This document shows positions 14,678-62,043 of a stretch of DNA of 64,000 nucleotides, piece by piece. The notes below the pieces were generated by a model. The model worked only from the letters and a program-made list of their open reading frames with translations, was not told the origin of the DNA and made no database searches. Location: positions 62,001 to 126,000 of IMG/VR virus record IMGVR_UViG_3300042922_001182; one strand, 5' to 3'. A program made the position numbers and the translations under genes. Each line of letters opens with the position of its first letter. Positions within the stretch are counted from its first letter, which is position 1.

Positions 14678-16786
14678 GTGTCCGATATCAGAATCGACAT
14701 CCGCCATGCCGCCATGGAGGCCATCGAGAACGGCACCCTGAAGGACAAGCCGACCCTGGCCAAGAGGCTCGGCGAGTTCTTGGAGCACTGCTCCGACGTC
14801 TACTACAACACCGGGGCCAAGGTCGTGTCCGACTGCGAGTACGACACCCTCCGGGACGGCCTCCGGGAGGCCACCAGGTCCAGCCTCCCCGTCGGGGCCA
14901 CCCCCCGCTCCGGCATGCTGACGGAGGAGCACGACTTCCCCGAGCTGGTCGGGACCCTGGACAAGCGAAACGTCGTATTCGGTGAGAAGAGCTTCCACGA
15001 GTGGCTGTTCAAGGCCATGACACGCGCCGGTGTGTCCAGGGCCCGTATGGCGGGTAGCCTCAAGCGGGACGGGAACAGCGCCGTGGTCACCTACCTCCGT
15101 GGCACCCCGGTCTCGGCGGTGACTCGCGGCAAGGACGGGAAGGGCGTGGACGTGCTCCACCTCCTCCCCAAGCACCGGATCTCCAACCCCTTCGCGGGGG
15201 ACTCCAAGCTCGGCATCAAGTACGAGATCATCATGCGGTACACCAAGCTCGACGCCCTCAACGAGGAGACCGGGCGCGGGTACGTCAGCCCCCGCAGCGT
15301 CGTCAGCGGGCTCCTGGGGAGCAAGGAGGCCTCCGAGGCGGCCCCCTACCTCTCCCTGGCCCCCCTGGACTACAAGCTGGAGGAGGGCGCGTATACGGAC
15401 GACAGGGGCGACCGGCTCGAAGTCCTGCACACCAACTCCATCGGCATCGAGGGCTGCGACGTCCTGCCCCTGGAGATGCTGGTCTTCGAGGGCGACGCCC
15501 AGGAGATCAGCGAGCAGCTCCAGTTCTGGTACGACGAGTGCATCAAGACCCGCCAGGACCTCGACTTCATGGTCGACGGCCTGGTGCTGGAGTTCCTTGA
15601 CGAGGACGTGCGGGAGGAGCTTGGCTGGACCGAGGACGGCTCCGAGCCACGCTGGGCCATGGCGCTCAAGTTCCCCTACATGGAGCAGACCACCAGGGCC
15701 CGTCGCTTCTTCCTGGAGATCGGGAACCTGGGCCGGGCCACCCCCATGGTGGAGTTCGACCCGGTGTACTTCAACGGCGCCAAGCAGACCAAGTGCTCGT
15801 TGGCCAACTGGAACCGCTGGGACAAGCTCGCCCCCATCGGGATCGGCACGGAGGGCCTGATCGAGTACCGCAACGACACGCTGTCGTACTTCGTCAAGCT
15901 CGACCTGGCGAGCAACGACCTCGTCGAGCCCTTCAAGTTCGAGGAGCGGTGCCCCTCGTGCGACACCCTGTTCTACTTCACGCACAACAAGGAAGGCGAG
16001 AGGGTGTTCGCCTACTGCACCAACTCCCACTGCCCCTCCGTCGTCGTCGGCAAGACGGTCAACTTCCTTGAGAAGATGGACGTCAAGCTGGTGAAGGAGT
16101 CGACGCTCAGGAAGCTGTACGACCACCACATGCTTCCGGCTGGCATCGAGAGCCTGTTCTCCCTCGACTACGAGGAGGTGGCGGTGCTCAACGGCCTCGG
16201 CAAGAAGTCGGCCGACGTCATCCGGCAGGCCGTGGAATCCATGAAGGGCTGCTGGGACTGGCAGCTCCTGGGGTCCCTCGGCATCGACAGCATCGGCAGG
16301 ACGCTGGCCAAGCGCCTGATGAAGGTCTACGACCTCTACGACCTGCTGGAGCTGATGAACGCCGAGGACAGCGCCGACGGCACCGAGAGGGCGTTCGTCC
16401 GCACCATCACCGCGACGGTCGAGGGCTTCGCCGAGAGCAAGAGCCAGAAGCTCTACGACGGCATCAACATCAACTGGGACCTGATCGTCTTCCTGTACGA
16501 GGCCCTGGAGCCGAAGACCTACCGGGACGAGCTGTCCAAGGCCAAGACCTCCGGTCCCAGCCTCAACCTGGTGGTGACCGGCTCGCTGAAGAACTGGTCC
16601 AGCCGCGACGAGCTGAAGGACAAGCTGGACCTCCTGGGCCACAAGATGTCCGACACGGTCAGCGCCAAGACCTCCTACCTCGTCACCAACACCCCCCACT
16701 CCGGGACCGGCAAGAACAAGAAGGCCCAGGAGCTCAAGGTCCCCATCATCACCGAGGACGAGCTGATGGCGATGCTCAACCTCTAG
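14678..16786 (+). CDS. ligA: NAD-dependent DNA ligase
   Basis: YY..G..V.SD.EYD, adenylation motif K.DG (LKRDG), TRGKDG.G.DV, DGLVLE, RWAMALKF, Zn finger CPSC...CTNSHC, HhH, C-terminal BRCT (VVTG..VSAKTSYLV). Confidence 0.93.
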   Translation: MSDIRIDIRHAAMEAIENGTLKDKPTLAKRLGEFLEHCSDVYYNTGAKVVSDCEYDTLRDGLREATRSSLPVGATPRSGMLTEEHDFPELVGTLDKRNVVFGEKSFHEWLFKAMTRAGVSRARMAGSLKRDGNSAVVTYLRGTPVSAVTRGKDGKGVDVLHLLPKHRISNPFAGDSKLGIKYEIIMRYTKLDALNEETGRGYVSPRSVVSGLLGSKEASEAAPYLSLAPLDYKLEEGAYTDDRGDRLEVLHTNSIGIEGCDVLPLEMLVFEGDAQEISEQLQFWYDECIKTRQDLDFMVDGLVLEFLDEDVREELGWTEDGSEPRWAMALKFPYMEQTTRARRFFLEIGNLGRATPMVEFDPVYFNGAKQTKCSLANWNRWDKLAPIGIGTEGLIEYRNDTLSYFVKLDLASNDLVEPFKFEERCPSCDTLFYFTHNKEGERVFAYCTNSHCPSVVVGKTVNFLEKMDVKLVKESTLRKLYDHHMLPAGIESLFSLDYEEVAVLNGLGKKSADVIRQAVESMKGCWDWQLLGSLGIDSIGRTLAKRLMKVYDLYDLLELMNAEDSADGTERAFVRTITATVEGFAESKSQKLYDGININWDLIVFLYEALEPKTYRDELSKAKTSGPSLNLVVTGSLKNWSSRDELKDKLDLLGHKMSDTVSAKTSYLVTNTPHSGTGKNKKAQELKVPIITEDELMAMLNL

Positions 16787-16792
16787 CACGAT

Positions 16793-16802
16793 CACATATT
16801 AT
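16793..16802 (+). promoter_or_regulatory. Early-type motif CACATATTAT overlapping hairpin 16799-16832
   Basis: Exact motif; TTATCCGAAAGACGC / GCGTCTTTCGGATAA inverted repeat. Confidence 0.55.
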
Positions 16803-16864
16803 CCGAAAGACGCGTGTGCGTCTTTCGGATAACTAACTTTTCTCTCTCGAAAGGAGATACGCGG

Positions 16865-17119
16865 ATGAAGAAGAACGACATCACCATGGCCTTCAAGCAT
16901 GTCAAGAGCGTGGTCGACCCCACCATCACCTACGAGGTCTCCCATTCCAAGAGCTCCCACGCCCCCGGGGCCAAGACCTTCATCAGCATCGACCCCGTCG
17001 AGCACATCGGCACCGACAAGGCAGCGCAGGCCCACATCGGCTCCGAGGTGGGGACCGGCGTCTACCTGGAGGACCTCCCGGCCGTGCTGGAGGCCGTCAA
17101 GTACGTCAGCGACGTCTAG
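16865..17119 (+). CDS. Hypothetical protein
   Basis: AAGGAG RBS. Confidence 0.7.
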   Translation: MKKNDITMAFKHVKSVVDPTITYEVSHSKSSHAPGAKTFISIDPVEHIGTDKAAQAHIGSEVGTGVYLEDLPAVLEAVKYVSDV

Positions 17120-17129
17120 GCGGTCGGGG

Positions 17130-17657
17130 ATGCACGGCCGATACGAGAACCTCCACTACTTCGAAGACTACCACGTCACCAAGGGGTTCTTCGACAGAGA
17201 GCCCATTTCCAAGAGCAGGAGCAAGAGATTGAAGACCAAGAAGAACAACGAGAAGAAGGCCAAGCGGGGGCAGCAACGGATCCGCCTCCCCGAGGGGGTC
17301 AGCGAGGAGAAGATGCGCGAGAAGCTCAGTGATTTCGTCTTCCATGCCCTGGGCCTGGAGCCGGGCGTCTACAACGTCGGCTCAGCGACGGCCCACGTCA
17401 AGGGTACCCCCGCCACCTGCTACGTCCGCGTGAAGCCCACCTGGTCCAGCGAGAGCAGCAAGATGTCGACCATCATCGTGACCCCCGAGTTCGCCGTCCT
17501 CTGCGAGACCGACAACTGGATCGACCTCGGTTGGCATGAGATCGGCAGCCGGTTCTACTACAAGAGCCTCAGCGAGCTGGAGGCCTGGCTCAGGGACCAG
17601 GTCCGCATGCCCGTGTCCCCCGCCTGGAAGGACAAGCTCCTTCCCATCGAGTCCTAA
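17130..17657 (+). CDS. Hypothetical protein (basic N-terminus)
   Basis: Codon bias from ATG17130. Confidence 0.65.
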   Translation: MHGRYENLHYFEDYHVTKGFFDREPISKSRSKRLKTKKNNEKKAKRGQQRIRLPEGVSEEKMREKLSDFVFHALGLEPGVYNVGSATAHVKGTPATCYVRVKPTWSSESSKMSTIIVTPEFAVLCETDNWIDLGWHEIGSRFYYKSLSELEAWLRDQVRMPVSPAWKDKLLPIES

Positions 17658-17666
17658 GGAGGGACC

Positions 17667-18236
17667 ATGCAAGAGAGAAACATCTACAGGGACCGAGACC
17701 TGGTCAAGTGCTGGCTCGACGCCGACGCCATCCTGTCGGGGGCTTCCAACCCGACGGCGGTGGCCCTGACCCTCCACCTGATGCTGTCGGCGCTCACCCA
17801 GCGTATCGGGGGCACCAAGAAGGCGGGGAAGTACGCCCCCGCCCTGGCCGTCCTGGCCCACCTCGACTACCTGATGACCGGCGAGTTCGCCTCCGGGGCG
17901 AAGGAGAGGGCCATCAACGAGGTCTGCCAGCTGATGACCTTCAGGAGCCAGCTGCTCACGCAGGGCAAGGACACCGACGACTACAACATCGAGTTCGGGG
18001 CGGACGGGAGCTACTGGCTCCTCTGGGACGGTGAGGTCGTCACCCTGGGGCAGGAGATGGCCGTCTACAACAGCCGACAAGAGCAAACCGGGACGGGCCT
18101 CGTCACCGGTTTCTCCTACGGGTACGCGACCGACTGGGACATCCCGTCGGAGCTCCGCTTCTGCGTCCTGGTCGGCCAGGTCCCCGTCGACATCACCCGC
18201 GTCAAGCCCATCAACCTCATCACGGAGAAGCGATGA
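17667..18236 (+). CDS. Hypothetical protein
   Basis: AAGGAGG RBS. Confidence 0.75.
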   Translation: MQERNIYRDRDLVKCWLDADAILSGASNPTAVALTLHLMLSALTQRIGGTKKAGKYAPALAVLAHLDYLMTGEFASGAKERAINEVCQLMTFRSQLLTQGKDTDDYNIEFGADGSYWLLWDGEVVTLGQEMAVYNSRQEQTGTGLVTGFSYGYATDWDIPSELRFCVLVGQVPVDITRVKPINLITEKR

Positions 18237-18418
18237 CCACCAACAACAGCGCAGATCGGGCCCGGGAGGCCGTATCCAAGACCGGCCACGCCACGTACCA
18301 AGGCCAGCCCATCCGGGAGTCCGTCGACGGGGGCTACCACGCTGGCCACAACCAGCGTTGGGTCCCCTGCCTGGACTCCGCCCTCTCTCACATCGAAGGG
18401 AGCAACAATGACCGATAA
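18233..18418 (+). CDS. Small hypothetical protein
   Basis: ATGA overlap with the upstream gene. Confidence 0.55.
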   Translation: MTTNNSADRAREAVSKTGHATYQGQPIRESVDGGYHAGHNQRWVPCLDSALSHIEGSNNDR

Positions 18419-19958
18419 GCAAGTTCTCTACCGCCTCGGTAGCACGCACGTCTCCACGTTCGGGTACCGCGTCGACGGCATCGGCCAGATCCTGGCGTTC
18501 TACGCCAAGGGACTGGACTCCAGCGGCGCGGTGGGCAACCAGCCCCTCGGTTACCTGTACGAGAAGCTGGACCCCGAGGTCAAGCTCTCCTCTATCCTGT
18601 TCGGCCGCTGCGACCCCTCCTTCACCGAGGAGAACGTCTACGAGGACGTGGTCAACGAGGGGCGAAAGCTGGCCTTCCTCCTGAACCCGTCGACCCGCCT
18701 CGCGGAGGCCCTGGCCTCGCTAGGGATCATCTACCTCAGCGAGGCCGACATGAGGTGGAAGTTCCCCAGGGGGAACTGGACCGACTGGTTCGTGGCGGAC
18801 ATCGCCCTGTGGAGCCCCATCCTCGACAAGCTGGAGGCGGACGAAGAGAAAACCATCTGCTTCAACTTCTCCTACGAGGGGGTCAATCACCGGGGGGAGG
18901 ACGGCTGGAGGTCCGCGATCCTCCACAGGGAGGCCCTCATCGAGCTCGCCACCAAGCACATCCGCTCCACCCTCCTCCAGGCAGCTGTGTGGGCCATGAG
19001 CGAAGGCACGTTCTCCGTCGCTGAGGAAGAGACGGCGGAACCCGCCAAGGAAGAGGAGGTCGAGGTGACGCTCTCACACGTCACTATCAGCCGAGCCATC
19101 GGGCTGCGGTACGCTGGTCGCTACCCCTCTGCATCGGACGCCCCCGCCCTTGTGATGCTACCGGGTGCCAACCGGCAGATCGTGTTCTCGCTGAGCTCCG
19201 TCCGGGAGGCCTTCTCCGACCCGCGAGGTCTCTGCAACGAGAGGATCTTCCGTCAGGTCCTCCGAGCAGGGATCATCGTCGACTTCCTCAGCAATGCCTT
19301 GTACGACGTTGAGGAGCTCGTCAAGGCAGAGGGGGCCGTGGTCGACGACCCCGAGGCGGGTGTGAAGGACGTCTTCGTCCTGGACTGCGCGTCCAGCGAG
19401 GACGAGCTCCACAACAACATGGTGGGCGTCATCACCGAGCTCGCCAGGGTGCGTCCCCGTGGCGCCACCCTGGACGATCCACCGGACGGCATCATCCGCT
19501 CCGACGACCCCGTGCCGGAGGACTTCTACGAGGAGTGGACCAGTGGGAGCACCCCCAGGAAGGCGCTCGCCGACTTCACCAGCCTTCTCCGGGATGACTG
19601 GGCCGAGAAGGAGCAGCCCTGCGGGTACGTCGATAGCTCCCTCGTGGAGGCGGCCCTGTCCAGGCAGGCTCTGTGGTACAGCGACGAGCCCATCACGAGG
19701 GAGATGTGCGAGGACCCTCGTGACTGGGACGAGATGCTCCGCCGGAACGAAACGAGGAAATCGGGAGACTACATCTCCTTCTGGTTCTCCATCGAGTTCA
19801 AGATGGTCTACCTCACCGCCGAGGCCTACCGGGCTTGGAGGCTGGGCGAGGTCGTGTTCGGCAACTTCCCCACGTTCACCGTCGAGGAGGCCGAGTCGAT
19901 CTACGAGCAGCGCTCCGGGGAGGCCGAGCTGGCCGACCGGGCAGAGGGCGAGGAGTAG
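18408..19958 (+). CDS. Acidic hypothetical protein, 516 aa
   Basis: AAGGGAG RBS, long ORF. Confidence 0.75.
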   Translation: MTDKQVLYRLGSTHVSTFGYRVDGIGQILAFYAKGLDSSGAVGNQPLGYLYEKLDPEVKLSSILFGRCDPSFTEENVYEDVVNEGRKLAFLLNPSTRLAEALASLGIIYLSEADMRWKFPRGNWTDWFVADIALWSPILDKLEADEEKTICFNFSYEGVNHRGEDGWRSAILHREALIELATKHIRSTLLQAAVWAMSEGTFSVAEEETAEPAKEEEVEVTLSHVTISRAIGLRYAGRYPSASDAPALVMLPGANRQIVFSLSSVREAFSDPRGLCNERIFRQVLRAGIIVDFLSNALYDVEELVKAEGAVVDDPEAGVKDVFVLDCASSEDELHNNMVGVITELARVRPRGATLDDPPDGIIRSDDPVPEDFYEEWTSGSTPRKALADFTSLLRDDWAEKEQPCGYVDSSLVEAALSRQALWYSDEPITREMCEDPRDWDEMLRRNETRKSGDYISFWFSIEFKMVYLTAEAYRAWRLGEVVFGNFPTFTVEEAESIYEQRSGEAELADRAEGEE

Positions 19959-19961
19959 GCC

Positions 19962-20651
19962 GTGGGCAGGGCCTTCTTCGCCTCCGAGGAGGACTGGGAC
20001 AGGATCCGCATAGCCCTCAAGGTGAAGAAGGTCGCCCACGGCATCCTGGCATGGCACCGGGAGCAAGGCAGGCATCACCTGCCTTGGCGGACGGAGAGGA
20101 CCCCCTACAGGGTCCTCACCTCCGAGTTCTTCCTGGGGAGGACGAGGGCCGAGCAGGTGGCCCCCGTCTTCCTCGCCATCCAGGAGAGATGGGCGGACCT
20201 TTCTTCTTTGGCCGCAGCCGACGCGGACGAGCTGAGGGAGGTGATACGACCGCTGGGGCTCATCGGAAGGGCCGACAGGCTGATCGCCACCGCCAACATG
20301 CTCCTGGAGCACCACGGCGGGATACCCGAGACCTGGCAGGAGCTCATCCAGTTCCCGGGTATGGGGCCCTACATCTCGGCGGCCACGGCCTGCTTCGCCT
20401 TCGGGCAGGAGGTCACCATCATCGACGCCAACGTCCTCAGGGTGTACCAGAGGATCTACGCGTCGGACCTGGAGGACGGGACGGTCACCCTGGGCTACCT
20501 GATCGAGGCCCACCCCCTCTACGCCCCGAGCTACGACGAGTGGAACTACGCCATCATCGACTTCGGCGGCCTGGTGTGCAAGGCCCGGGGTGCCAAGCAC
20601 GACCTGTGCCCCCTCACCGATGTCTGCGACCACTTCCAGATTAACCAGTGA
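19962..20651 (+). CDS. HhH-GPD DNA glycosylase (MIG T:G/U:G-mismatch-like rather than full MutY)
   Basis: LPWR...PYRVLTSE..L.RT, HhH LIQFPGMGPY, DANVLRV, Fe-S loop C-X6-H-X2-C-X5-C; no C-terminal 8-oxoG domain. Confidence 0.85.
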   Translation: MGRAFFASEEDWDRIRIALKVKKVAHGILAWHREQGRHHLPWRTERTPYRVLTSEFFLGRTRAEQVAPVFLAIQERWADLSSLAAADADELREVIRPLGLIGRADRLIATANMLLEHHGGIPETWQELIQFPGMGPYISAATACFAFGQEVTIIDANVLRVYQRIYASDLEDGTVTLGYLIEAHPLYAPSYDEWNYAIIDFGGLVCKARGAKHDLCPLTDVCDHFQINQ

Positions 20652-20662
20652 GGGGGCCTGCG

Positions 20663-20674
20663 AACAAACCCCTA
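20663..20674 (+). promoter_or_regulatory. Late-type promoter AACA-aacccc-TA
   Basis: Exact motif about 30 nt before ATG20706. Confidence 0.55.
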
Positions 20675-20705: not shown

Positions 20706-21125
20706 ATGGAACTCAAGCGTGATAAGATCATCCTCCTGGAGCTCGACGAGAACGAGCTGACGGAGGTCGACAAGAAGAACGGCGTGCAGAAGGGCAAGGG
20801 CTATCGGGTCCACGCCGTGTACGACGGCAGCAGCAACCCGATCGCCACCTACGACGGCAAGCTGAACCGGACCGACCTGGACGCCCTGGAGAAGCTCCCC
20901 GAGGACACCGTCGTCGTCCTGGTGAGCGGTGTCCGGAACCCCGACCCCGACCCGTTCGTCTGGAGGCGCTACTCGCTCTCCGGCAGCTTCATCAAGAACG
21001 ACGGCGGTCAGATCCAGTTCGCCGGTCTGGTCAACGGTCGCGAGTGCGACGAGGCCGAGACCGCGTACCTGGACTTCGTCTTCCCCCGTTACCGCGCTCG
21101 GGCCTTCGCCCCCGCCAAGAGCTAG
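20706..21125 (+). CDS. Hypothetical protein
   Basis: AAGGAG RBS. Confidence 0.75.
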   Translation: MELKRDKIILLELDENELTEVDKKNGVQKGKGYRVHAVYDGSSNPIATYDGKLNRTDLDALEKLPEDTVVVLVSGVRNPDPDPFVWRRYSLSGSFIKNDGGQIQFAGLVNGRECDEAETAYLDFVFPRYRARAFAPAKS

Positions 21126-21131
21126 CCAAGT

Positions 21132-21200
21132 GCCCCATCCCTCGCCTGAGGGATGGGGCAAATGAAGAGAGCGATGGGCCGCTCGGGTCCATCGCTCTCT
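21132..21200. terminator. Two hairpins between convergent genes
   Basis: GCCCCATCCCTC/GAGGGATGGGGC and AGAGAGCGATGG/CCATCGCTCTCT. Confidence 0.55.
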
Positions 21201-21214
21201 GGTCTTGTTGTAGC

Positions 21215-21517
21215 TTACGCCTTCGCGGCGGGCTCGGCCTTGCGGCCGTTGACTTCGTCCTTCAGGCCCTTACCGGCCGAGAAGTACACCTGCTTGTGGG
21301 CGGCGATGTCGATCGCCTCGCCGGTGCGGGGGTTGTGGCCCTTCTTGGCTTCCACGTCGCGGGTCTTCAGGGTGCCGAAGTTGGTCAGCACGACGGTGCC
21401 GTCCTTCTGGAGGCCCGTGGTCAGACCCTTCAGGAGGCTGTCGACCACCAGGCCGGCGTCCTTCTTGGTCATGCTCAGGTCATCGGCGACGAAATCCACG
21501 AGATCGGTCTTGGTCAT
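21215..21517 (-). CDS. hup: HU family DNA-binding protein
   Basis: MTKTDLVDFVA...FGT...GHNPRTGEAIDI...FSAGKGLKD. Confidence 0.93.
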   Translation of the reverse strand: MTKTDLVDFVADDLSMTKKDAGLVVDSLLKGLTTGLQKDGTVVLTNFGTLKTRDVEAKKGHNPRTGEAIDIAAHKQVYFSAGKGLKDEVNGRKAEPAAKA

Positions 21518-21557
21518 TGTCTTTCTTCCTTTCGTTTGGCCCATAAGGGCACAGCTC

Positions 21558-21571
21558 AACATCGAATTGTT
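21558..21571. promoter_or_regulatory. Quasi-palindrome matching AACA-N6-TG on both strands
   Basis: CAACATCGAATTGTTG; the minus copy points to HU and the plus copy towards RNAP beta-N. Confidence 0.5.
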
Positions 21572-21709
21572 GTGTGGCGGGGGGTGGAAAACCCCCACCG
21601 CAGCGAGGGGCCGGGGATTAAGTCCTTACTACTGCGCCGTGATGGAAGCAAATATGATGGAGATGTCATTCGGCGCTCCGGCTTTTTGCCTGGCTCTGGG
21701 TCCCAAAGC

Positions 21710-21806: not shown

Positions 21807-23225
21807 ATGAAGAAATTCCTGAGCGAATTCTCTCCCGGTGAGCCCTTCAACGAGGAGTTCATCTTCGCCAAGGACAACGACGACGTGCTTGCCTACGTGG
21901 ACGACGTGGCGGCCACCCTCAACGTGATCGAGGGCGTCGAATACCTGGGGAGCGAGCTGATCGCCGACGAGACGGAGCTACGGCCCCGTCAGGAGGACGG
22001 CAAGCAGTGGATGAGCCTCGACGAGAGCCGCCTCGACATCATTAGGATGCAGTGGCGTATCACGAAGGGGGAGGAAACCGAGGTGATCACCCAGGAGGTG
22101 CTCTACCCCAAGCTCATCGACCACCACTACTACCTGATCAACGGGGTGAAGTGCTACCCCATCTACCAGATCGTGGACTCGGAGTGCTTCAAGACCTCCA
22201 GGTCGGTGACGCTCAAGACGATGGTCATGCCCATCATCCTGCGCCACGAGCCGGAGGAGTTCGAGGACATGGAGGGGAACGTCTACAACGCCCACTCCTA
22301 CAAGCTCCACCTGTTCCACTACAAGATCAACTACCTGCTCTACTACCTCTCCAAGAAGGGGTTCGAGCAGACCATCGAGTACATGGGCTGGGACGCCTAC
22401 CACCTGGGGCTGCTGGACGCCGAAGAGGCGAGCGGCATCGACCAGGAGGTCTACCGCCTGTTCAAGGTCTCCGGGACCAGCGTGCTGTACGCCTCCAAGG
22501 AGATGCTGCAGGACCGCAACGGGCTCGACATGGTGGCGTCGCTGCTGGACGTGCTGGAGGGCAAGACCCGCCCCGAGAAGGCGGCGGAGATCGAGTACTG
22601 GAAGCGCAAGCTCGGCTCGGTGTTCACCAAGAACACCGTCAACTACGTCGAGAAGGCCGAGAGCATCAGCATCTCCTTCGAGCGCATCATCGGAAGCCGC
22701 GAGCACAAGGTGCTCCGGATCGACGACGAGGACAAGAAGGACACCTACAGCGTCGTGCGCTGGATGGTGAGGAACTACGAGGAGCTGCACCGCCAGGACA
22801 ACATGGACCTGCGCCACAAGCGCATCCGCCTGCACGAGTACCAGCTCTACCCGCTCCTGACTAAGCTGTCGACCGGCCTGTACCGGGCCCTCAACACCAA
22901 GGACCCCAAGTTCAACGACCTGAAGCAGATCCTGCGCGTCGGCCCCGGCCACGTCATCAAGCGCCTGCTCAACAACGACCTGCTGCGGTACAGCAGCGCC
23001 GTCAACGGCATGGACCTCTTCAACAGCGCGTTGAAGTTCTCCTTCCGTGGCCCGCAATCGCTGGCCGACGGCGGTAAGACGATCTCGACCAAGTACCGGG
23101 GCATCCACCCCAGCTACATCGGTCGGATCGCGCTCAACACCAGCTCGAACGGCGACCCCGGCATGGGTGGCACGTTCTGCCCGTTCATCCAGCCCCACGG
23201 CCAGTACTTCACCAAGGAGAGATAA
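21807..23225 (+). CDS. RNA polymerase beta subunit, N-terminal half (probably non-virion RNAP)
   Basis: YPKL....YYLINGVK..PIYQI, DNMDLRHKRIR..E, and KFSFRGP...YRGIHPSYIGRI....SSNGDPG match RpoB (R.VHPTHYGR.CP..TPEG...G). Confidence 0.88.
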   Translation: MKKFLSEFSPGEPFNEEFIFAKDNDDVLAYVDDVAATLNVIEGVEYLGSELIADETELRPRQEDGKQWMSLDESRLDIIRMQWRITKGEETEVITQEVLYPKLIDHHYYLINGVKCYPIYQIVDSECFKTSRSVTLKTMVMPIILRHEPEEFEDMEGNVYNAHSYKLHLFHYKINYLLYYLSKKGFEQTIEYMGWDAYHLGLLDAEEASGIDQEVYRLFKVSGTSVLYASKEMLQDRNGLDMVASLLDVLEGKTRPEKAAEIEYWKRKLGSVFTKNTVNYVEKAESISISFERIIGSREHKVLRIDDEDKKDTYSVVRWMVRNYEELHRQDNMDLRHKRIRLHEYQLYPLLTKLSTGLYRALNTKDPKFNDLKQILRVGPGHVIKRLLNNDLLRYSSAVNGMDLFNSALKFSFRGPQSLADGGKTISTKYRGIHPSYIGRIALNTSSNGDPGMGGTFCPFIQPHGQYFTKER

Positions 23226-30321: not shown

Positions 30322-30395
30322 GCCTTCGTAGCTCAGCTGGACAGAGCGGGTCCGTCCTAAGGACAAGGTCGGGGGTTCGAATCCCTCCGGGGGCG
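30322..30395 (+). tRNA. tRNA-Arg (anticodon CCT), CCA not encoded
   Basis: Acceptor GCCTTCG/CGGGGGC, D-arm GCTC/GAGC, anticodon loop GT-CCT-AA, T-loop GGTTCGAATCC. Confidence 0.88.
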
Positions 30396-30438
30396 CTCGC
30401 CGAAAGGCGCTAACGGCAAAGAGAAGGAGAGAAGCAAC

Positions 30439-32454: not shown

Positions 32455-33627
32455 ATGAACGCCAAGGAATCCCCCACCGTCCCCCTGCACCTGGTGCTCG
32501 CCATGGTCGGCGGCAACCACGACGACCGAGCGCGGATCCTCTCCTCGGCCCCTATCTTCCTGGACTACGGCACAGTCTCGGGTCTGGAGGAGCTGGCCAA
32601 GGCCCTCGACTTCATGGGCCAGAAGTCCGACCGCTGGAGGAAGGCCCAGTACTTCGCCAAGATGGAGTTCCTGCGCCTCGGCGGCTGGCGCTTCCTGGAC
32701 CGATACGGCGACCCGTCGTCGTACGGCGCGATGGCAAAGATGGTCTTCCTCGACGACTGCCCTGAGTACGAGCTATTCGAGAAGCTGGTCTCCAACCCCT
32801 ACGCCCCCATGATCTCGGAGCAGGCCTACCGGCAGCTGCTGGAGGAGCTGGACCGGCCCCAGCAGCGGATCGCCTACCCCGAGATCCCCCTCCCCGAGGG
32901 CTACGTCGTCGTCAAGGCCCCCGCCTTCGAGGAGGACCCCCGAGACATGATCAGCCCCGGGGGCTACGAGGAGGCACTGACGAAGGCCGGTATGGAGACG
33001 GTCGTTCTGGAGGAGACCGTGGCCCAGGTGGAGCCCACCCCTCTGGCCGTCGTCTTCCCGCCCAGGAACCCCGAGCTGGACCGGAACCCCCCTCCGTCAC
33101 CCTACCACACGGCGTCCCCGGAGCCCGTCGTCTCCACCGCCACCACCATCTTCCGCTCCAGCCAGAAGATCGTGCTCGACGGCGAGTGGTGGGTGGAGGC
33201 CAACCCCAACATCACCGCAGGCGAGTTCCTCAAGAAGACGCATCCCGATAACACCCGCGTCCTGGTCGAGGTGCTCCGCGACGGAAGCCAGGTCGCCGTC
33301 CACAGGGACGACCGGATCTTCTTCCACAGCAACGTGTTCCGGGTCTTCCGGCTCTACGAGCAGGAGAACGGTGAGCCCAAGAAGATCGCACCCGCCGTGT
33401 TCATGTACGGTCTGGATGGCGAGATGGTCGTTGCCTCAAAGCGGATCATGACTGCCGAAGAGATCCTGAAGGACAACGGCTGGGATCCGGAGCTGTTCTA
33501 CCTCGTCGAGCTACTGGGCAGCAGCCAGCAGGAGAGCTACGAGAACAAGAACGGCACCGAGTTCGACTTCGCCCTGCCGGACCACAGGCGCCTCGTCGCC
33601 GTCTACTGTGGTTCTACCGCCAACTAG
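32455..33627 (+). CDS. Protein with C-terminal tandem multi-ubiquitin-like (beta-grasp) domains
   Basis: Two repeats, IVLDGE...ITAGEFLK...LVEV and YGLDGE...MTAEEILKDNGWDPELFYLVEL.G...ESY...RLVAVYCG; GGAGG RBS. Confidence 0.6.
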   Translation: MNAKESPTVPLHLVLAMVGGNHDDRARILSSAPIFLDYGTVSGLEELAKALDFMGQKSDRWRKAQYFAKMEFLRLGGWRFLDRYGDPSSYGAMAKMVFLDDCPEYELFEKLVSNPYAPMISEQAYRQLLEELDRPQQRIAYPEIPLPEGYVVVKAPAFEEDPRDMISPGGYEEALTKAGMETVVLEETVAQVEPTPLAVVFPPRNPELDRNPPPSPYHTASPEPVVSTATTIFRSSQKIVLDGEWWVEANPNITAGEFLKKTHPDNTRVLVEVLRDGSQVAVHRDDRIFFHSNVFRVFRLYEQENGEPKKIAPAVFMYGLDGEMVVASKRIMTAEEILKDNGWDPELFYLVELLGSSQQESYENKNGTEFDFALPDHRRLVAVYCGSTAN

Positions 33628-33637
33628 GAAGGACACC

Positions 33638-34168
33638 ATGAAAGCTTACGTCACCATAGGTCTCCCCGGATCGGGGAAGACCACGTTCGTCAACGAGTTC
33701 CTGCCCAACGCGGTGAACCTGAACCTGGATGACTACCGGGCGATGGTGGGCACCGGGCCCCACGACATGCAGGCCTCCAGGGAGGCCGCCGCACGGCGGG
33801 ACCTGGACCTCCGGGTCGCCGCCTCGGAGGGCCGGGACGTCGCCATCAGCGACACCAACATGAGCAAGAAGTACAGGCTCCCGCTGATCCACATGCTCCG
33901 GGGTCTGGGCTACGAGGTGATCTTCGTGCTGTTCGACGTCGGGTGCGCAGTCTGCTGCACCCGGCAGTCCGATAGGCCGGTTGAACAGCAAGTGCCGTAC
34001 GAGGCCATCAGGAGCATGGACAAGCGCTTCTTCGAAGACGGCGCTTTCAGCACCGACGAGTACGACCGAATCATCAACATCGTCCCTTCCTACTCAGGGA
34101 GGCTGTTCGACAGCAAGCCTCCTACCATAACGATGAGGAGCGGCGGCTTCCCGTGGTGCGTCACATGA
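33638..34168 (+). CDS. P-loop polynucleotide-kinase-like protein (AAA_33)
   Basis: IGLPGSGKTT, LDDYR, ISDTN, R...R....VP.EAI..M. Confidence 0.8.
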   Translation: MKAYVTIGLPGSGKTTFVNEFLPNAVNLNLDDYRAMVGTGPHDMQASREAAARRDLDLRVAASEGRDVAISDTNMSKKYRLPLIHMLRGLGYEVIFVLFDVGCAVCCTRQSDRPVEQQVPYEAIRSMDKRFFEDGAFSTDEYDRIINIVPSYSGRLFDSKPPTITMRSGGFPWCVT

Positions 34169-34848
34169 CGGACGACAAAGGGCTGGACTTCCAGCAGGCG
34201 CAGAAGCGCCGGGTTGCCGACACGGTGATGAAGGAGCTGGGGCTCAACGCGGAGGACCTCGCCGCCGTGGCCGAGACGGCGCCGAAGGAGATCCGCGACG
34301 CCTTCTACGACTGCCTCCAGCGCAACGCGATGTACAAGAGCATCGGCAGGCAGCGGGCGGCGGAGGAGGAGGCGAGCGGGACCCCTGGCGACAGGTGCTG
34401 CAACGTGGTGTGCCCCAGCTTCAAGCAGAGCGAGTTCGAGGTGGAGACCCCCACCGAGGGCGGCTGCATCCGCATCTCTTGCACCGGGAAGCAGAACTAC
34501 TGCACGGGAGGCGTCGACAGGGCGCAGGGCTGCACCCACAGGATGAAGGAGATGCCCCCGAGCGACCCGTTCCGCTCCGACATCCCCTCCCACCAGGAGG
34601 CGGTCAACATGCTCATGCGGGCGGGTCTCCTGGAGCCGGACGAGTTCGGCCACTTCAACGGCACCGACCTCGCCCACAGGGCGGCGACGCGCTCCCTGTG
34701 GTGGGCCTATGTCGATCTCCTTGCAGAGACGGGTAAGATCCCCATCATCAACTGGACGGATGAAGACGGCGTGCAGCTCCCCGACAGGGGGGCCGTGGCC
34801 CAAGCCGCCAAGCACCACCTTTTCGGGGGCGAGACCCCCGCCAGCTAG
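34165..34848 (+). CDS. Cys-rich hypothetical protein
   Basis: ATGA overlap; cluster of Cys/His. Confidence 0.7.
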   Translation: MTDDKGLDFQQAQKRRVADTVMKELGLNAEDLAAVAETAPKEIRDAFYDCLQRNAMYKSIGRQRAAEEEASGTPGDRCCNVVCPSFKQSEFEVETPTEGGCIRISCTGKQNYCTGGVDRAQGCTHRMKEMPPSDPFRSDIPSHQEAVNMLMRAGLLEPDEFGHFNGTDLAHRAATRSLWWAYVDLLAETGKIPIINWTDEDGVQLPDRGAVAQAAKHHLFGGETPAS

Positions 34849-61368: not shown

Positions 61369-62043
61369 CTAGAACTTCTTCTCCTCCAGGTAGCCGACCA
61401 GCCCCCGGATGCCCGCCGCCAGCGGCTCGTCCTGCTTGCCCTCGGCGGCCCGGTAGATCCGCTCGATCAGCTCGGAGACGAACAGGGCGTGGTCCTTGAG
61501 CGACTTCGCAACGACGAAGCTGTAGAGGTGCAGGCAGAAGACCGTGGCCTCCACCTGGGCTCTGGCGTGGTCGGCGCCGGGTTGGCTGGAGAGGATCTTC
61601 CTGACCATACCGGCGACCGGACGGAGGTTGCGGAACTGGAACTTGCTACCCCGCATCTTCTCGTACGCCTCGCTGTACATCTTGTTGTTGTGCGCCTTGT
61701 CCTTGTACTTGGCGGTGGAGGCCAGCTGCCCGCCGATCCTGGTGCGCAGGCGCTCCAGCTTGTAGGCGTCCTGGATCTGGGTGAAGACGGCGTTGGTGAC
61801 CTTGCCCTCGGGGGTGGCGACCTCGGCGTTCTCGGCGAGGGACTCGGTCATCATGTCGTAGTTCGCGGAGCCAGGAGCCAGGCTCATGTGCTCCACGTTC
61901 TCTCCGACGATGTCCTCCTTGAACTCCTTGTTGGCCTTCTGGAGGATCTCCTCGAAATCGGCGTTGAAGTTGTCGATCTCCTTGATGAGCTTGGCGTCCT
62001 CCTCATCAGCGGTGAGGAACGCCATCGACGTGTTGTCTTGCAT
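61369..62043 (-). CDS. Hypothetical protein
   Basis: Purine-rich RBS, codon bias. Confidence 0.7.
   Translation of the reverse strand: MQDNTSMAFLTADEEDAKLIKEIDNFNADFEEILQKANKEFKEDIVGENVEHMSLAPGSANYDMMTESLAENAEVATPEGKVTNAVFTQIQDAYKLERLRTRIGGQLASTAKYKDKAHNNKMYSEAYEKMRGSKFQFRNLRPVAGMVRKILSSQPGADHARAQVEATVFCLHLYSFVVAKSLKDHALFVSELIERIYRAAEGKQDEPLAAGIRGLVGYLEEKKF

Follow-up and report, generated by a model that had tools for sequence, protein, structure and literature searches.

The locus lies within a 64,000-nucleotide stretch of DNA (hereafter the window; positions 62,001 to 126,000 of IMG/VR record IMGVR_UViG_3300042922_001182), which forms part of a phage genome of 239 kb with 63.5% GC. An open reading frame at window positions 19962–20651 (+) starts with GTG and encodes a protein of 229 residues. 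It has a GC3 of 0.92, like the rest of the genome, and is matched by the Pfam HhH-GPD profile at 6e-11. A GAGGAG ribosome-binding site at 19950–19955 (+) precedes the start codon by 6 nt and lies inside the end of the upstream gene, so that the two genes are probably translationally coupled.

Upstream is a NAD-dependent DNA ligase gene (14678–16786, +), a homologue of AR9 g095. It is followed by an AR9-type early (virion RNAP) promoter core, CACATATTAT, at 16793–16802 (+). This is the nearest promoter upstream of the glycosylase, and the likely start of a transcription unit covering genes g074 to g079. Between them are four co-oriented genes of unknown function (16899–19958, +; 252, 189, 61 and 516 aa). 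Downstream, a match to the AR9-type late (non-virion RNAP) promoter, AACA-N6-TA, is found at 20663–20674 (+), 43 nt upstream of the next gene, g079 (20706–21125, +; 139 aa), a conserved backbone gene of unknown function. The glycosylase has no such motif of its own. A 15-bp hairpin terminator at 21166–21200 separates g079 from the convergent gene for an HU-like DNA-binding protein (21215–21598, −), which is equivalent to AR9 g103 and serves as the syntenic anchor. The terminator marks the end of the unit. Next comes the N-terminal piece of the non-virion RNA polymerase beta subunit (21807–23225, +), a homologue of AR9 gp105 with 40% identity, in which Arg363 of the uracil pocket is conserved. 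Searches of Pfam, PHROGs and the Atlas gave nothing for g074 to g077 or for g079.

An earlier note, made from the sequence alone, had drawn attention to this gene, to a ligase, a Nudix protein and a kinase, and had proposed that a MIG-like glycosylase may let a uracil-DNA-type phage stay GC-rich. The kinase is a P-loop protein of the polynucleotide-kinase type (33608–34168, +; AAA_33, phrog_505). A Nudix-box pattern search did not find the Nudix protein, although not every gene was scanned with Pfam.

Family placement of the glycosylase

The sequence features described in the earlier note are all present. The protein has SEFFLGRT where MutY has SEVMLQQT, PLGLIGRA where MutY has GLGYYARA, and GMGPY (Tyr137) in the hairpin, and only seven residues follow the last cluster cysteine, so that there is no C-terminal 8-oxoG-recognition (NUDIX-like) domain. 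One correction is needed. Tyr in the HhH does not separate MIG from MutY, because 35 of 42 full-length MutYs in our set also have Tyr, as has been noted for B. stearothermophilus MutY (PMC2714593).

Other positions, not listed in the earlier note, are better discriminators (PMC2714593). The protein has Ala63 where MutY has V45 and Mig.MthI has A50; D-A-N where MutY has D-G-N; and Tyr196 where MutY has Q182 or E188 and Mig.MthI has L187. In the family of short MutY-like proteins 96 of 123 have Ala at the first of these positions, and Tyr, Trp or Leu dominate at position 196, while in the MutYs 32 of 42 have Val and 34 of 42 have Gln or Glu. The catalytic residues Glu55 and Asp155 are intact and, with Tyr137, align with E42, D144 and Y126 of Mig.MthI, the Tyr being the one needed for T/G activity. 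The cluster loop (Cys206, His213, Cys216, Cys222) reads C-x6-H-x2-C-x5-C, keeping the spacing of the Cys-x6-Cys-x2-Cys-x5-Cys [4Fe-4S] loop but with His as the second ligand. This natural variant occurs in 11 of 174 family members. It explains why the best PDB sequence hit is 1KQJ, a mutant of the MutY catalytic domain (reportedly the engineered C199H mutant) that carries His at the aligned position.

In phylogenetic analysis the protein falls outside the true MutY clade, with support of 0.997 from FastTree and an SH-aLRT of 100 from a fast IQ-TREE search, although the small clade to which it belongs sits next to MutY. It scores 216–219 bits against a profile of the short family and 188.5 bits against a MutY profile. 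The short-family profile in turn has Mig.MthI (1KEA) as its best solved match, at 252 bits compared with 225 and 202 for MutYs. The score against the MutY family model TIGR01084 is 141 bits with a cut-off of 286.5, and against PRK10880 it is 117 with a cut-off of 427. The predicted structure (pLDDT 93.4) superimposes on 1KEA with TM scores of 0.81/0.85. The top three reviewed-protein structure matches are the T/U glycosylases of Aeropyrum pernix (Q9YDP0), P. aerophilum (Pa-MIG, Q7LX22) and M. thermautotrophicus (Mig.MthI, P29588), at TM 0.79–0.85. However, fold comparison alone cannot separate MIG from MutY, since TM is about 0.8 to both.

These three enzymes share with the phage protein a single HhH-GPD plus iron-sulfur-cluster domain of about 220 residues, Glu, Asp and Tyr at the catalytic positions, Ala at the V45 position, Arg before the conserved Thr (L-x-R-T), G-L and D-A-N. 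Identity is only 27–29%, and the phage protein differs in Tyr196, in His213 and in Leu40, where Mig.MthI has Phe27.

It might be argued that the gene encodes a truncated MutY, acting on A:G or A:8-oxoG without the 8-oxoG-reading domain. The best pairwise PDB and Foldseek hits are E. coli MutY core fragments, identity to the E. coli and Geobacillus MutY catalytic domains is 30–31%, and the fold, cluster and catalytic dyad are the same. Pairwise, the protein is as close to the E. coli MutY core (105 bits) as to Mig.MthI (89 bits), and databases name many homologues 'A/G-specific adenine glycosylase'. Against this are the tree, the family cut-offs and the change of all five MutY signature elements (LQQT, V45, GY, DGN and Q182/E188). 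V45A and Q182L each reduce the adenine activity of E. coli MutY (PMC2714593). Nor does anything show g079 to be a detached C-terminal domain: it has no Pfam family and no supported Atlas match, it has its own late promoter, and it is conserved in relatives that lack the glycosylase. We therefore consider a truncated MutY improbable.

The closest relatives of the protein sit next to C5-cytosine methyltransferases, as does Mig.MthI. Two sister proteins (P0004 and P0080 in our set) are encoded adjacent to PF00145 genes. This linkage is typical of the family rather than strictly defining, and it is absent here, as there is no PF00145 gene anywhere in the phage. None of the ten best-matching proteins checked lies on a jumbo-phage-sized contig.

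An AR9-like genome

The genome is of the AR9/PBS1 type, although its GC content is 63.5% against 27–28% in the PBS1/PBS2/AR9 system. Of its 259 proteins 67 are syntenic with AR9, and the RNAP beta-N piece hits only AR9-group phages, which include the known dU-DNA phages AR9/PBS1 and phiR1-37. All the pieces of the split virion and non-virion RNA polymerases have AR9 homologues, at 29–44% identity. The 483-residue homologue of gp226 conserves the uracil-selecting Val206, which excludes thymine (PMC9209446). Both AR9 promoter classes are present, early (cACATATTAT) and late (AACA-N6-TA). ATATTAT occurs 21 times, against an estimated expectation of about 3, and 18 of these are intergenic; AACA-N6-TW is 11 times denser in intergenic DNA, with 25 oriented sites. 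Gene g143 is a homologue (31% identity) of AR9 g151, an annotated deoxyribonucleotidase. The PBS1 dTMP phosphatase (Dtm) is a nucleotidase of this kind (PMC12697855), and we infer that AR9 g151 is its counterpart.

No ThyA, ThyX, dUTPase or UDG was found. No dCTP/dCMP deaminase (Dcd) was found either, although the characterised dU-DNA phages encode one (PMC12697855), nor were an RNR or an AP endonuclease. A search for Ugi in the AR9-syntenic gap between HU and beta-N, and genome-wide by tblastn, returned no homologue, only highly acidic small proteins as candidates. Because sequencing reads U as T, the presence of uracil in the DNA is here an inference.

No C5 or N4/N6 methyltransferase and no ThyA-type dCMP methylase was found. 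This bears on an alternative already raised in the earlier note, that the enzyme carries out ordinary T:G repair alongside 5mC methylation. In this reading the phage DNA would be methylated by host Dcm-like or restriction-modification methylases, and the enzyme would correct the T:G left by deaminated 5-methylcytosine, as Mig.MthI and Vsr do for their hosts. The linkage of the sister proteins to methyltransferases and the role of Mig.MthI itself (PMC2714593) fit this reading, the enzyme chemistry would be the same, and host methylation cannot be excluded. The absence of phage methylases weakens it, however, as does the same absence in the second GC-rich phage described below, and we regard it as unlikely.

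Distribution among relatives

Single-protein scans of IMG/VR with the glycosylase and with beta-N found nothing, and alignment-based scans were needed. Among complete or near-complete AR9-like genomes, HhH-GPD genes occur in 2 of 2 GC-rich and 0 of 6 AT-rich ones, and 12 partial AT-rich records also carry none. With only 8 genomes, the one-sided Fisher probability is about 0.04. AR9 itself has no gene matching PF00730. Its g110, annotated as 'N-glycosylase, EndoIII/AlkA family', was considered as a possible orthologue and rejected: BLASTP shows no similarity, a PDB sequence search finds nothing, and PF00730 does not match it.

The second GC-rich phage (IMGVR_UViG_3300046660_000716, here G018), the only other complete GC-rich AR9-like genome that could be searched, carries an unrelated 143-residue enzyme of MBD4 type, predicted to have the same job of removing U or T opposite G. 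This belongs to a different HhH-GPD subfamily, of about 140 residues and without an iron-sulfur cluster, with 23% identity over 115 residues to the protein studied here. G018 also keeps the gp226 Val and lacks ThyA and a C5 methylase. The phage homologues of its MBD4-type gene sit in the nucleotide-modification cluster of Xp12-like phages. Xp12 DNA carries 5mC in place of C.

Two closer GC-rich relatives, L011 and L013 (62% and 67% GC), keep the same backbone locus, including g079, but lack the block formed by the glycosylase and the four genes before it. GC-richness therefore does not depend on the gene, at least at this locus. The reverse reading fits better, namely that high GC makes U:G repair worth having.

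A possible role in repair of deaminated cytosine

On the basis of these observations, we hypothesise that the gene encodes a monofunctional, mismatch-dependent pyrimidine DNA glycosylase of the Mig.MthI type, which should flip out and excise U (and T) lying opposite G, but not U opposite A. This specificity is inferred from family placement and from the methyltransferase linkage of the sister genes. In this view, the phage took the gene from a bacterial or mobile-element module in which such enzymes accompany C5-cytosine methyltransferases, and kept the glycosylase without the methylase. In a phage whose DNA most likely carries U in place of T, Ung-type repair would destroy the genome, and must be blocked or avoided. 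A G-mismatch-specific enzyme would be the one glycosylase chemistry that can still recognise deaminated cytosine (U:G) among normal U:A pairs. The gene is probably transcribed from the early virion-RNAP promoter, so that the enzyme could act on incoming and replicating DNA, with a host AP endonuclease, a polymerase and the phage ligase completing the repair. The benefit would scale with the number of cytosines, which would explain why such enzymes appear in GC-rich members of this phage group only.

We put the probability of this explanation at about 0.5. The gene, its fold, its catalytic residues, its family placement and neighbourhood, the affinity of the phage to AR9 and the distribution among relatives are established by the analysis, whereas the substrate specificity, the presence of U in the DNA, the timing of expression and the biological role are inferred. 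No biochemical data exist for this protein or its near relatives. The observation in the earlier note is confirmed, while its interpretation is supported only in part: a MIG-like enzyme in an AR9/PBS1-type phage is supported, but the claim that the enzyme explains the GC-rich genome is not.

A different role is also conceivable, though unlikely. The gene could have another lesion specificity, or could tell T from U, for example by excising stray thymine so that U-dependent promoters stay active, or by damaging T-containing host or competitor DNA. It lies in a lineage-specific accessory block, position 196 is Tyr rather than Leu, and AR9-type late promoters are inactivated by T at positions −10 and −11 (PMC9209446), so that removing T would have value. 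However, characterised members of the MIG family prefer mismatches (PMC2714593), none is known to cut matched T:A, nothing in the sequence points to loss of mismatch dependence, and the convergent MBD4-type gene in G018 points to G-mismatch repair.

The dU-DNA phages that we could check are AT-rich to moderate in GC, with AR9 at 27–29% and DSS3_VP1 at about 46%. To our knowledge, it has not been asked how such genomes deal with cytosine deamination when uracil is a normal base. The soil lineage of AR9-like phages at 62–67% GC described here, and the two unrelated G:U/G:T-type glycosylases in the two complete GC-rich genomes, make the question testable, and suggest that such phages need this route of repair. 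If the idea holds, it would provide a rule for how modified-base phages keep their sequence stable, a genomic marker for predicting DNA chemistry from metagenomes, and a U:G-specific glycosylase that tolerates U:A and is probably insensitive to Ugi, which would be a useful reagent. More tentatively, phages that replace a pyrimidine throughout their DNA (U for T in AR9-like phages, 5mC for C in Xp12-like phages) may recurrently and independently recruit G-mismatch-specific HhH-GPD glycosylases of MIG or MBD4 type, as the only deamination-repair chemistry compatible with their altered DNA. In the U-DNA lineage, selection for it would appear only once the genome is GC-rich, and these enzymes would then be a predictable companion module of pyrimidine-substituted genomes, and a sequence marker for them.

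The predicted glycosylase and its family

The open reading frame at window 19962-20651 (+) has a GTG start and encodes 229 residues. A GAGGAG ribosome-binding site lies six bases upstream, inside the end of the preceding gene, and the third-position GC content is 0.92, matching the rest of the genome. Pfam assigns an HhH-GPD domain (6e-11). Among the NCBIfam models the protein is nearest to mutY, but it scores 141 bits against a cut-off of 286.5. A search of PDB sequences gave matches to E. coli MutY core fragments (101-106 bits), Geobacillus MutY (about 92-94 bits) and Mig.MthI, 1KEA (89 bits), with much weaker matches to endonuclease III (about 42 bits) and MBD4 (about 25 bits). An AlphaFold model built on 76 relatives is confident (pLDDT 93.4).

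All of the sequence features listed in the earlier note are present, namely L-G-R-T, PLGLIGRA, Tyr137 in the hairpin, and the absence of a C-terminal domain, and the observation is therefore confirmed, although one of these features proves not to discriminate (below). The catalytic Glu55 and Asp155 are intact. The iron-sulfur cluster loop (window 20577-20627, residues 206-222) reads C-x6-H-x2-C-x5-C, so that His213 replaces the second cysteine ligand of the [4Fe-4S] cluster. The top PDB hit, 1KQJ, is a mutant of the MutY catalytic domain (C199H) and carries His at the same aligned position. The same substitution occurs naturally in 11 of 174 relatives, in both short proteins and true MutYs.

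In order to distinguish between MIG and MutY, 174 homologues were collected, to which were added E. coli MutY and Nth and an archaeal-virus homologue. Proteins with a long C-terminal tail, which are the true MutYs, share a signature of LQQT, Val at position 45, G-Y, D-G-N, and Gln or Glu at position 182. The short proteins instead have L-x-[RKQ]-T, Ala, G-L, D-[TAVS]-N, and Tyr, Trp or Leu. The phage protein takes the short-family state at all five positions. The earlier note counted Tyr in the hairpin as a MIG feature, but it does not discriminate, because 35 of 42 MutYs also have it. V45 and Q182 are the published adenine determinants; Mig.MthI has A50 and L187 at these positions, and its substrate order is U/G = T/G > G/G > T/C = U/C > A/G (PMC2714593).

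In phylogenetic trees the MutY clade is strongly supported and excludes the phage protein (FastTree 0.997; IQ-TREE SH-aLRT 100). A profile of 71 short-family proteins finds Mig.MthI as its best solved relative, with 252 bits, against 225 for Geobacillus MutY and 202 for E. coli MutY. The phage protein scores 216-219 bits on a short-family HMM that was built without it, and 188.5 bits on a MutY-clade HMM. Among reviewed proteins with predicted structures, the top three matches are the three thymine/uracil glycosylases of A. pernix, P. aerophilum and M. thermautotrophicus. However, the MutYs follow closely behind, and fold alone cannot separate the two groups.

The nearest relatives are only 37-45% identical to the phage protein. 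Its small sister clade consists of three homologues, P0004, P0080 and P0061 (support 0.88 / aLRT 73). P0004 and P0080 are each encoded directly beside a C5-cytosine methyltransferase (at L015:4525-5616 and L016:3959-5029), in islands that also carry HerA genes and, for P0080 (L016), a NurA gene. These have the appearance of defence or restriction-modification islands with a built-in deamination-repair gene. Mig.MthI sits beside a methyltransferase in the same way. This is the strongest contextual evidence that the subfamily deals with deamination products opposite G. The phage itself has no C5 methyltransferase and no N4/N6 methyltransferase. A PF00730 search of the phage genome finds exactly one gene, which is this one, and which also serves as a positive control for the negative searches.

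An AR9-like phage genome and the organisation of the locus

The window covers bases 62001-126000 of a 238,984-bp IMG/VR genome with direct terminal repeats and 63.5% GC, from a soil metagenome. The RNA polymerase (RNAP) piece next to the glycosylase hits only AR9, PBS1 and other Bacillus relatives, phiR1-37, LPJP1 and the Staphylococcus S6-like phages. AR9/PBS1 and phiR1-37 are documented dU-DNA phages (PMC9209446, PMC12697855). S6 is a dU-DNA phage too. Of our 259 gene calls, 67 have AR9 homologues in conserved order, including all virion and non-virion RNAP pieces, the capsid, portal and sheath proteins, the ligase, and gp226.

Both classes of AR9 promoter motif are found. The early promoter core of AR9, ATATATTAT, reappears here as cACATATTAT, in 21 copies against about 3 expected by our estimate; 18 of these are intergenic, and nearly all point at a downstream gene. 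The late-promoter consensus of AR9, AACA-N6-TA, is 11 times denser in intergenic than in coding DNA. It occurs 25 times in the right orientation, mostly 36-59 nt upstream of start codons and mostly before structural genes.

In AR9, Val206 of gp226 clashes with the methyl group of thymine and makes the promoter uracil-dependent (PMC9209446). The homologue here has Val at exactly position 206, in a conserved helix, and Arg363 of the beta-N RNAP subunit piece is also kept. A distant group of gp226-like proteins (P0226-P0233, 28-30% identity) keeps the YSD-x-x-x-W helix but has Arg or Lys where AR9 has the uracil-selecting Val206, and their promoter-base preference may differ.

The phage has no ThyA, ThyX, dUTPase or UDG. 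It has a homologue of AR9 g151, which is annotated as a 5'(3')-deoxyribonucleotidase. The PBS1 dTMP phosphatase Dtm is a nucleotidase of this kind (PMC12697855), and we infer that g151 is its AR9 counterpart. Three observations count against a complete PBS1-style pathway: searches found no dCMP or dCTP deaminase, no recognisable Ugi, even in the slot between HU and beta-N where AR9 keeps it, and no AP endonuclease. Uracil DNA is therefore likely but unproven. Unlike AR9, the phage also encodes no ribonucleotide reductase homologue detectable by tblastn, and if its DNA holds uracil, the dUTP must come from host enzymes. Outside the window, at bases 34111-34443 (+) of the phage genome (G000:C1), there is a gene for a 110-residue protein with 33 acidic and 4 basic residues. 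This is a candidate DNA mimic, and could stand in for the missing Ugi; it is one of a number of acidic small proteins. The only tRNA gene of the phage, tRNA-Arg(CCT), lies at window 30322-30396, where it is overlapped on the other strand by our ORF call g092, which is probably spurious.

The glycosylase is the fifth gene of a six-gene plus-strand unit, which begins after an early promoter at 16793-16802 and ends at a strong hairpin at 21166-21200. A 15-bp perfect hairpin at 16799-16832 begins inside the early-promoter core, three bases after it starts, and may terminate the ligase gene or regulate the promoter. The NAD-ligase lies just upstream of the unit, and HU and the beta-N RNAP gene lie just downstream, as in AR9. 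The four genes before the glycosylase (g074-g077) have no detectable family. The gene after it (g079) has its own late-type promoter at 20663-20674, and is conserved in relatives that lack the glycosylase, so nothing suggests that it is a detached MutY domain.

Relatives of the phage and their base composition

Protein searches with beta-N found closer, uncultured relatives on JGI contigs of 168-262 kb. These are also GC-rich: L011 (JGI 3300056750 Ga0558064_0000103) at 62% GC, with 52% identity, and L013 (L013/L014, JGI 3300056809/3300056798) at 67% GC, with 50% identity. They share the backbone from the ligase to HU and beta-N, but have neither the glycosylase nor g074-g077 there. None of the ten best-matching glycosylase homologues checked lies on a jumbo-sized contig. 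The enzyme is therefore not what keeps this lineage GC-rich, at least not from this locus.

A wider scan of IMG/VR found 20 AR9-like loci, and 18 of their records were searched with PF00730. All of these are 24-45% GC with the exception of one, G018 (IMGVR_UViG_3300046660_000716, locus L044), which has 259,338 bp, terminal repeats and 64% GC. G018 is the only one of the 18 records with a hit. AR9 itself and a further complete genome of 32% GC also have none. AR9 g110 (L002:37372-38082) is annotated as 'N-glycosylase, endonuclease III/AlkA family', but it matches neither PF00730 nor any PDB sequence, and the annotation could not be reproduced by these searches. The proven dU-DNA roseophage DSS3_VP1, at about 46% GC, has no HhH-GPD gene.

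The G018 gene (L047:1411-1842 (+), equivalent to G018:C1:214863-215294) encodes a protein of 143 residues whose only PDB sequence matches are MBD4 glycosylase domains (about 1e-9). MBD4 removes T, U and 5hmU opposite G (PMC3458566). The G018 protein is 23% identical to the protein studied here and has no iron-sulfur loop. G018 also keeps the gp226 valine and lacks ThyA and a C5 methylase. Its beta-N is only 36% identical to ours, whereas a relative of 29% GC reaches 47%, and the two GC-rich genomes are therefore separate lineages. Uncultured AR9/PBS1-like jumbo phages at 62-67% GC thus fall into at least two separate lineages, with beta-N identity to ours of 50-52% for one and 36% for the other. 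Their GC content is far above that of AR9 (27-29% as measured here) and DSS3_VP1, and above that of all 17 other AR9-like IMG/VR records examined.

Counting complete or near-complete genomes only, HhH-GPD glycosylases occur in 2 of 2 GC-rich and 0 of 6 AT-rich AR9-like phages, giving a one-sided Fisher probability of about 0.04 by our calculation, although the sample is small and leaves the two GC-rich relatives L011 and L013 unresolved.

The phage homologues of the MBD4-like gene are in Xanthomonas phage Xp12 and its relatives, with others in Stenotrophomonas and Janthinobacterium phages and in a cyanophage. Xp12 is the classic phage whose DNA carries 5mC in place of C. In the Xp12-like phages (in Xp12 itself at L049:3378-3860 (+), MT664984.1 46973-47455) the MBD4-like protein is annotated as hypothetical, and its gene sits directly beside the HAD hydrolase, 'thymidylate synthase', dCMP deaminase and DHFR genes of the nucleotide-modification cluster. 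It is therefore a plausible T:G repair enzyme for deaminated 5mC, and represents a second case of a pyrimidine-substituted phage genome paired with a G-mismatch glycosylase.

On the basis of these observations, the enzyme is best described as a MIG-type G-mismatch pyrimidine glycosylase, a new and divergent protein within that family, which was taken from a methyltransferase-linked module and is kept by a GC-rich AR9-like phage. The gene, its family placement and its genomic context come from the analysis itself, while the substrate range, the presence of uracil in the DNA and the early expression are inferred. The interpretation put forward in the earlier note is partly supported. Its functional idea, that the enzyme repairs U:G while sparing U:A in uracil DNA, is the best-supported explanation, and gains independent support from the convergent MBD4-type gene. 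Its further claim, that the enzyme explains the GC-rich genome, is not supported; the more defensible direction is that high GC content creates the need for the enzyme.
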